The notes beneath the pieces were generated by a model. It saw nothing but the letters and a program-made list of their open reading frames with translations. It was not told where the DNA came from and searched no databases. Positions 2,470 to 5,400 of a DNA stretch of 64,000 bases are shown piece by piece (position 1 is the first letter of the stretch; each line of letters opens with the position of its first letter). A program made the position numbers and the translations under genes. Source of the stretch: Tubulanus polymorphus (Eukaryota; Animalia; Nemertea); assembly GCF_964204645.1 (NCBI RefSeq), contig NC_134030.1:6304778-6368777 (forward strand). Reading direction: 5' to 3'.

Positions 2470-5400
2470 ATGAAGGGGATTTCGTCGATTTTAGGTCCGA
2501 TTTTAGGGATATTGTTGTATATATCATGCCAGACATCAGCAAGTAAGTAAACAGAACATTTCTTCAATCGCCAGGAACAATGATTATGTTTGGTTGATTA
2601 CTAAGAATGGTGTTAATTTCGATGATTGCCCCAAAACTAAATTCGTTAATTTTCACTTCCGGGTGTGTCCGCGAAGCGACGAATGACTAAGTAAGAGAAA
2701 AGAATAAATATCCAGATAAAAATAAATCAGATTTGGTGACCTCTGCAGCCCTGGTCCCTGTAAATGATTTTAATTCACTCAATTCACGCTGTGGGACAAT
2801 GCCCAACTAATACGGGTCCTCCACATTATTCTAAAGAAGAATTCACCTTACTTATTGTTATTGTTATATTTCTTGATTTTACAGTGATAATGTACTGTCC
2901 AGATATTCCATATCCGTTGGGAATGGAAAACGGTACGATCCTCAACGAGCAAATATCCGCATCGACTGAACACAAACAACGACCGGCGTACAACGCACGG
3001 TTACATCATAGATCAGGTAAATAAAAACCTTCAAAATTCTACTCTATATTTTTTAAACATTATTAGGTATTTTACCTTAATAAATAAAATAATGATCTGT
3101 CCTTCAAATTAATCCATTTGATAACCATTGGATTGGTAAACACTTTGTCGGTGGAGATTTGCGATGAAAAAGTAAATTATTAGCTTAATGGAAACTTTTC
3201 GGACTTCATTTTTCTTGTTATATCAGTTGAAAAGAAATAGCCTAGATTTTGATGCCAAAAACTAACTTCACAAGAAAAAACTTTGATTTATTTGCCTCAT
3301 TACTAATCTTAGATTCGATTCCCGGTTACATTCTTGTTTGTTCTTTAGCCTATAGTGAGCACCTATGAGAGGAAAGCCTGATTCCTAACTGTTCATCGAG
3401 AGAAAATGATAATAATTTAGGACCTTTAAGAATGAGGATATGAGAATGAATAAATACTAAACTAATTTGAAATAATTAATTGGGTTCATACGAGATTAAG
3501 TGTGTTAAAAGGAATTATATTTGTTATACTAAAATACATTTTGAACAAATTTGTTTTGAGTTGGGCGATATCAAGAAATACTGTCTACTTACTACATTGT
3601 ACTTTAAACCCTTTCCTGACTGACCTATATTTAGGTATTTTGTGTTGCCTTTTTTTGTTAATCATCGACTTTTTTCTTTAATGAAATAACAATGATAATA
3701 ATTTTTCGAAATGCCACTGACCATTAATTATAGTTAGGCCTATTAAACAAAGGGCAGCACCTCTCCTATGCCTTACGTCTGAAAATACAGTTTTCTGAGC
3801 AGTAGGAGCGACCGAAAACAGCATGAAACGGGTTAAAAATGCGGTATATATTATAATATAAAAAGGTGCTTCGTAGCTAAAAGCCCTTCGAATTGAATAG
3901 GATGCAATGTATTTTGTTCTAATTATAGCCTGGTTAGGCGATTTAAACGATTATAAACAATACTTGACGATCGAGTTTAAAGAGACGAAGGTCGTGACTG
4001 CGGTCGCGACACAGGGTCTACGCGGCAGTCGTAACTGGGTACAAGAATACCACATCGAATACAGCAGCGACGGCGAGACCTGGGAACAAGTCATCTCGGA
4101 CAACGGAGAACAGAAGGTAAATTGATACAGATCGATGGTGACTAATCGATATTTCTCGTGTTTCTTTTTTCCTTTACGCGGCTACGATTGACTAAACAGC
4201 GTGGATGGCAGGACTGTCCGATTTTAATCAGTATATAACGATCGATTTGTTGACCACGCACACAGTGACGTCAATCGCGACGCAAGGACGACGTGCCAGT
4301 CGGGAATTCGTCAGCGAATTCTTTCTGTTTTATTCGAACGACGGGGAAACGTGGCAGAGATATGCCGCGCAGGACGGACGTCCGGTGGTGCGTTAGATAT
4401 GATACGTTGTTAGCATGATGGTTGTTGTATTATTGAAATGGGTATTGTTTTGGTGTGAGCTTTTATTGTAGTCTTTTAGGGTCCACTTCAAAAAATCTCA
4501 GGGTCCAGTTTCGCAAAGAGGTATTTTAGTCTATACTAAGCCAATTAATTCAGTCTATCTATATGAGAAGTAAGCCTTTTTGTGTAACTGGTCTCTCTAT
4601 TGCAAACTGGAACCCATACTTATTGTTGAGAAGACAACTATTGACATGAAACAAGTTTACCATCAATGGTGGTAAACTATTCTTCTTCCTTAGGTGCTAC
4701 TGAAGTCCCACCCCATACTGACCTTTAGTTTATCCCTTCGGAAGCATGCAAAATATTATCATTGGTGTATTATGTAGTGAAATATTGGTGTTTTTTCACA
4801 TTTTGATAATTGTTTATTTTCTACAGTTCTGAAGTGTCATTTCCGTCCCATCGTCACGAGTTGTTCTTTCAGTTTTTTTGTGAATTTTTTCTTGCATTCA
4901 AAGAGTGTATTGATGTCGTAAATCACCTGTGTCTGATCTCTCTAAAAGAAAAATATCAGTAGTCACTTTCGTAATATTTCCTACTGCTATTAGATTCATT
5001 ATTGATGATTAGTTTCGGCTCTGTTTTTAGTTGTTTATTGGCAACACGAATGCTGATGGAGTCGTCCACAGTTATCTACAATACCCGATCATCGCTCGTT
5101 GGATACGTTTTAATCCTCAGAGATGGAACGGATTCATCGCTATGAGAGTCGAACTTTATGGCTGTAAATATGGTATGTACTGAAGACAATCACGAGCCTA
5201 AAATGGTCTTGTGTTCTACATTTTTAAAAGGGTGGTCACCACTGTCATTTTTTTATGTCAACCCCTCTTTAAATCTGCCACCCCTGTTAAGAATATGAAG
5301 CTCCTTGTCAGATTTGCTATCGATGTTTATAACTGGATTAATCAACTGGAAATTCTTTATTCCACCGAATGATGACTCAGTCAACAGCTGAGGTGTTGTC

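Follow-up and report, generated by a model that had tools for sequence, protein, structure and literature searches.

The window, by which we mean the whole 64,000-nt stretch of Tubulanus polymorphus DNA analysed here, contains a Neurexin IV gene, all of whose exons lie on the plus strand. Using a profile of two tandem exons of this gene, A and B, we retrieved a protein of 1316 amino acids (XP_074652127.1, our P0142), which RefSeq names neurexin-4-like from the palaeonemertean T. polymorphus and whose spliced match to the window is exact over 25 exons; the RefSeq isoforms at the locus are XP_074652126 and XP_074652127. The exact match to XP_074652127.1 places coding exon 1, with the ATG and the signal peptide, at 2470..2542. 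It is followed by the constitutive exon 2 (2885..3016, phase 1-1), encoding an N-terminal part of the discoidin domain, by the alternative discoidin exons A (3929..4116, residues 69-131) and B (4200..4387), separated by an intron of 83 nt (4117..4199), and by a constitutive exon for the C-terminal part of the same domain (5031..5172), the last being identified both by Pfam and by the spliced match. The same two sources define 19 further constitutive exons (5731..15530), which encode four LamG and two EGF stretches and a central region, and the last coding exon (17223..17413), with the remaining transmembrane helix and a cytoplasmic tail ending in EYFL. Between these lie two alternative juxtamembrane exons, C1 (15768..15914, 147 nt, phase 1-1), found in RefSeq isoform X1, and C2 (16785..16928, 144 nt, phase 1-1), found in RefSeq isoform X2.

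In the protein, Pfam recognises an F5/8-C (discoidin) domain at residues 47-173, four LamG_2 stretches and two EGF stretches, and there is also a single transmembrane helix with a short tail, which is the layout of discoidin, LamG, EGF, transmembrane and tail elements described for Neurexin IV/CNTNAP proteins (PMC10084454). Residues 590-800, where a fibrinogen-like central domain would be expected, gave no Pfam match, and this region aligns over its full length with a Caspr-like protein of Saccoglossus. In a tree of 834 columns the T. polymorphus protein groups with that of Lineus (support of 93), inside a spiralian clade (98) and sister to arthropod Nrx-IV. The initial annotation had taken the gene for a Neurexin IV of non-arthropod type, and the RefSeq match and the tree placement bear this out. 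Since paralogues of an internal exon found elsewhere in the genome are just 35-39% identical, Neurexin IV looks single-copy in T. polymorphus.

A mitochondrial, ALDH2-like aldehyde dehydrogenase gene with a single intron lies on the minus strand (287-1961), head-to-head with Neurexin IV, and the two start codons are ~500 nt apart, an arrangement that suggests a common promoter. Elsewhere in the window, five tandem VWA-like exons (30764-35630, plus strand) and the exons of a dopamine-receptor-like GPCR (40759-59694, minus strand) were judged by eye from the list of open reading frames.

The initial annotation described A and B as tandem paralogous exons of exactly 188 nt with identical phases, and the coordinates, lengths and AG/GT ends were all verified. 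Exon A has the boundaries ag/CC TGG ... AAG/gtaaat and exon B the boundaries cag/CG TGG ... GTG/gtgcgt, and in both the entry phase is 1 and the exit phase 0. The two exons agree at 27 of 62 residues (44%) and at 103 of 188 nt, with 37, 40 and 25 identities at first, second and third codon positions, respectively (each out of 62), and score 47.1 (A) and 48.9 bits (B) with the Pfam F5/8-C model, for which the cut-off is 28.2. Their common motif, W..QY.TI..V..ATQG..YS.DGETW, and the flanking junctions at 3016 and 5031 are likewise as first reported. A search of the whole 268-Mb assembly with exon A matched only A and B, and a word search with exon B as the sole query returned zero candidates. 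At position 3999 of the window, exon A carries a synonymous T>G variant in all three DNA-type sequence runs (runs X1-X3).

When the exons are joined in silico to their neighbours, translation reads through with A alone or with B alone. The claim that the frame is broken by including both or neither also holds, with a stop at codon 144 in the first case and at codon 77 in the second. A and B are thus adjacent homologous exons of equal phase and length that are frame-incompatible together, and at the level of sequence a mutually exclusive architecture is supported.

Both RefSeq isoforms carry exon A and neither carries the intact exon B; isoforms X1 and X2 differ from each other at the juxtamembrane tandem pair and not at the discoidin pair. 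Among the runs, whose labels are distinct from those of the RefSeq isoforms, runs X1-X3 consist of unspliced, DNA-type contigs. One contig of run X2 joins 4575 to 6597, which would take out three whole exons and the greater part of another, and this junction is probably a library chimera, because it comes from a single run with patchy coverage. Run X4 is labelled T. polymorphus yet is only ~80% identical to the window, which by this measure marks the animal as a congener or a cryptic species. One X4 contig of 3731 nt aligns to e2, where its match to the window starts, and further on to A, to e5 and to e7. The record positions of these matches (56, 278, 538 and 955) are those predicted for an intron-free e2-A-e4-e5-e6-e7 product; with both exons included, e5 would stand at position 726, versus the 538 observed. 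Exon A is therefore used alone in that animal, the contig being informative on presence only. The situation is similar in Lineus longissimus, where all three RefSeq isoforms have only the upstream exon of the pair and the second exon is unannotated.

Several results speak to selection on the two exons. Between A and B, the Jukes–Cantor estimates are 1.68 for dS and 0.56 for dN (omega 0.33), with synonymous sites near saturation, and 9 of the 12 differences listed between the X4 contig and the window in exon A fall at third positions. In simulations of neutral decay (n = 6000), 5-11% of the sequences kept an open frame, and their best score on a Tubulanus-free profile was 59 bits against 88 bits for exon B, so that 0 of 6000 reached it. 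Exon B also scores higher than exon A on the profile and keeps 17 of the 19 conserved columns, compared with 13 of 19 in A. Taken together, omega, the simulations and the third-position changes in A indicate that both exons are under purifying selection, clearly so in the case of exon B, and the open frame combined with the failure of every simulation to match it argues that B is not a dead copy. It is very improbable that exon B is a copy, silent or in decay, that the gene never uses, leaving it with one discoidin isoform: such a view would suit RefSeq isoforms and a single transcript contig that lack B, but not a copy whose frame is open, whose length is exact and whose splice sites are intact despite near-saturated synonymous sites, and which outscores A where no neutral simulation comes near it. 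Furthermore, Lineus likewise retains an intact second copy. By the terms of the initial annotation, its proposal would fall if only one exon were ever transcribed and the other were free of purifying selection, or if the two were regularly spliced together. This check came out half in its favour: B is under selection and the sole transcript seen is A-only, and in RNA B was not seen.

The tandem exons C1 and C2 encode the juxtamembrane stalk and the start of the transmembrane helix. Their lengths are both multiples of 3, so the frame imposes no exclusion on this second pair. Lineus has three copies of the stalk exon (L003, at 17369, 17914 and 19185), the third being in none of its listed isoforms, and Ruditapes has two (L005, at 22022 and 22252), with one each in Tegillarca, Chelonus and Macrostomum. 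Unlike the wasp locus examined, with its single stalk exon, Tubulanus has a second alternative pair at this place.

We compared the exon corresponding to the discoidin pair across bilaterian loci. L. longissimus has two exons of 188 nt in phase 1-0, 890 nt apart. In arthropods, two copies are found in Chelonus, where they rank third and fourth among the coding exons, and in a decapod-like contig (L011), and both exon types are present in isoforms of Procambarus, Onthophagus, Rhynocoris and an ant. A single copy is present in Tegillarca, Ruditapes and Macrostomum and in two further spiralian loci (L008 and L012), none of these five loci having a gap. Saccoglossus has one true copy; its RefSeq model XP_006816028.1 repeats part of the discoidin exon (L013, at 25244 and 27854), and since the repeat is identical and adjoins an N gap, we dismissed it as a product of the assembly. 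Wherever it is retained, the 3' intron falls 186 nt after the start of the conserved Trp codon (in Saccoglossus judged by eye only), and the 5' intron of the exon is in phase 1 across these loci. This common 3' boundary and 5' phase indicate that what was duplicated was a single exon already present in the bilaterian ancestor. The nemertean pair duplicates the same exon as the arthropod pair, as the initial annotation implied by likening the two, with rank, 3' boundary and 5' phase in agreement among Chelonus, the decapod-like contig, Tubulanus and Lineus. The single exon of locus L008 (10025-10210) is closest to nemertean exon A (48%), which hints either that B was lost there or that the origin of the pair is slightly wider.

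The Tubulanus gene resembles both the vertebrate CNTNAP/Caspr genes, compared by domain order, and the single-exon spiralian Neurexin IV genes in its discoidin domain, four LamG stretches with EGF, transmembrane helix and short tail, and its discoidin exon boundaries are as in Saccoglossus and the bivalves, where checked. Unlike Tubulanus, Saccoglossus and the single-exon spiralians carry one middle discoidin exon.

The initial annotation left two possibilities for the switch, that it is ancestral to protostomes or that it evolved convergently. We built an exon tree of 38 rows and 62 columns, in which all 22 arthropod rows form one clade (95/89), with the nemertean copies outside it; in the best tree the derived first exon of arthropods sits within their second exons. 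Strict constraints uniting nemertean A with arthropod first exons, and B with second exons, were rejected by the AU test (p of 0.037 and 0.039), and the swapped strict pairing was not (p of 0.074), in tests that put the single-exon taxa outside the constrained clades and so overstate the rejection of shared ancestry. When these taxa are left free, the penalty for shared ancestry is only 2.7 log units, and the test does not reject it (p-AU of 0.145-0.153). Convergence is thus favoured by the best tree and by the single exons of other taxa, with ancestry standing unrejected, and the exon tree taken alone is weak on the question of origin.

It is unlikely, in our view, that a single duplication in the protostome ancestor made nemertean A and B orthologous to arthropod exons 3 and 4, with one copy being lost in molluscs, in flatworms and in other spiralians. 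Exon, boundaries and gene position are all the same, as such a history would predict, the constrained trees go unrejected (p-AU of about 0.15) once the single-exon taxa are free, within-lineage gene conversion could blur orthology, and an ACUAA lies early in the intron between the two exons both in Tubulanus and in a primer of the fly intron-3 amplicon (PMC3919595). Nevertheless, the arthropod copies are monophyletic in the best tree, with the first exon nested among the second, the clades of strictly matching order are rejected, the insect first-exon motif YG.NG.DY is in no nemertean exon, and at least four independent losses would be required among the sampled spiralians. It is quite likely that the nemertean duplication was independent of that of the arthropods, on the grounds of the tree and of a distribution that asks for two gains versus one gain and at least four losses.

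As Lineus also has the pair, the nemertean duplication is old, and it most likely took place in the nemertean lineage or in a spiralian lineage close to it. The relationships of the nemertean exons among themselves do not resolve in the 62-column tree. Exon A of Tubulanus is 47% identical to that of Lineus, a level like that of the remaining protein, and this points to a single old duplication. For Tubulanus and Lineus to have duplicated the exon separately, giving at least three duplications when the arthropods are counted, seems quite unlikely to us: their B exons are only 27% identical, species-specific clades go unrejected (p of 0.33 and 0.52), and QGMR is common to A and B of Lineus as DGETW is to A and B of Tubulanus, but the identity of the A exons equals the background between the two whole proteins, these exons group with that of L008 at 77/91, and in both species it is the upstream exon that is annotated.

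With regard to how joint inclusion of A and B might be prevented, TGACTAAT (4139-4146) is the sequence in the A-B intron that best matches a branch point. The predicted branch A, at about 4145, would be separated by 29 nt from the donor of A and by 55 nt from the acceptor of B. The tract that follows it is 80% pyrimidine, the richest of the gene's 26 introns, and lies within an AG-free zone of 67 nt. A distance between donor and branch point under about 40-50 nt blocks splicing, and a steric block is the most likely means of exclusion because the spacing of 29 nt is below this range, so that the distant branch point of B would be too near the A donor for A-B joining. Distant branch points have been associated with mutually exclusive exons (PMC5378181), and steric mutual exclusion is described for exons 2 and 3 of alpha-tropomyosin (Smith and Nadal-Ginard 1989, as cited in PMC5378181). 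The Tubulanus intron is like that case in its distant branch point near the upstream donor, its long pyrimidine tract and its AG-free zone, and unlike it in belonging to another gene and in having a branch point that is predicted and accompanied by a weaker proximal alternative. This alternative, CCTTTAC at -24, lies 60 nt from the A donor and would permit A-B joining, and the same gene has a constitutive intron of 85 nt, so the block is not airtight. It also cannot, to judge by length, be conserved in Lineus, where the A-B intron has 890 nt. Nonsense-mediated decay (NMD) would serve as a backup by clearing the products with both exons or neither, and frameshift with NMD would remove such splicing errors whatever the mechanism. 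The alternative based on RNA pairing gained no support, as shuffled sequences fold equally well as the A-B region (z of -0.32), and no strong or shared inverted repeats of the docking/selector kind were found in Tubulanus or Lineus.

A second TGACTAA in the A-B intron (4189-4195) ends 4 nt before the last base of the acceptor. This is less than the 8-nt minimum between branch point and acceptor (PMC5378181), which makes its use as a branch point unlikely; by position it is a candidate repressor site. There are ten plus-strand TGACTAA motifs in the 64 kb, two of which lie inside this 83-nt intron, and the T. polymorphus genome has a QKI/HOW-type STAR-dimer gene. In the fly, HOW binds intron-3 elements near the acceptor and favours exon 3 over exon 4 (PMC3919595, PMC11893892), the choice there depending on HOW and Cdk12 by way of ACUAA elements. 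A HOW/QKI protein acting on the two ACUAA motifs might possibly repress exon B in Tubulanus. The inter-exon intron of Chelonus lacks ACTAA, and that of Lineus has it in mid-intron only.

Our main reading, to which we give a probability of roughly 60%, is that the two 188-nt exons are spliced exclusively to produce two discoidin isoforms, that they stem from an old and independent duplication, and that exclusion is steric with NMD; exon A would be used by default, and exon B would give a minor form, probably limited to certain tissues. We consider it rather unlikely that ribbon worms independently re-evolved the whole fly design, with the same exon, an epithelial/glial default and a neural form, and control by HOW/QKI through ACUAA, in which case the ACUAA site would double as the steric branch point and the stalk swap, added to the A/B swap, would yield four Neurexin IV ectodomains from a single gene.

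Either alternative exon supplies the central 62 residues of the discoidin domain, and in an alignment to neuropilin-2 b1 it spans two loops, one following the conserved Trp and the other following TQG. We take these to be two of the three loops that, in neuropilin b1, build the ligand pocket and, in the factor VIII C2 domain, the membrane spikes. The first reads LGDLNDYK in A versus MAGLSDFN in B, and the second LRGSRNW versus RRASREF. Since the exon holds two of the three loops of the ligand tip, the swap should alter binding partners and keep the fold, as far as the loop positions indicate.

The mutually exclusive exons 3 and 4 of Drosophila Neurexin IV were reportedly described by Stork in 2009 and by Rodrigues in 2012. 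Their assignment in the initial annotation, with exon 3 being glial/epithelial and exon 4 neuronal and Wrapper-binding, agrees with PMC3245913 and PMC11893892. The Tubulanus pair resembles this system in belonging to an orthologous gene family, in deriving from the same ancestral exon (the third/fourth among the coding exons, in phase 1-0 and with a common 3' boundary), in being frame-incompatible, and in having ACUAA in the inter-exon intron and near the downstream acceptor. In contrast to Drosophila, the Tubulanus exons cannot be assigned to either class of arthropod exon, so a separate duplication is likely, and the intron is only 83 nt long, with a predicted branch point of the steric type. 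Use split between glia and neurons and a Wrapper partner are features described for the fly. In its architecture and its place within the domain, the Tubulanus pair is like the fly exon 3/4 switch (PMC3245913). That the nemertean pair belongs to the Drosophila switch by descent is probably false.

In our search of the literature, whose coverage left out most subscription journals, no paper on the nemertean pair was found. We consider the exon pair to be real and under selection, and probably mutually exclusive and convergent. It also corrects RefSeq, since exon B is absent from the isoforms found in both nemerteans.

Neurexin IV/Caspr proteins are core components of septate and paranodal junctions and act in adhesion between neurons and glia. 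Flies divide the epithelial/glial and neuronal roles by the swap of one exon, and vertebrates have several CNTNAP paralogues. The presence of the pair in nemerteans, and not in the examined molluscs, flatworm and hemichordate, suggests repeated selection to diversify the same ligand-binding loops, and offers a natural comparison for learning the binding partners of the discoidin tip in animals other than insects.
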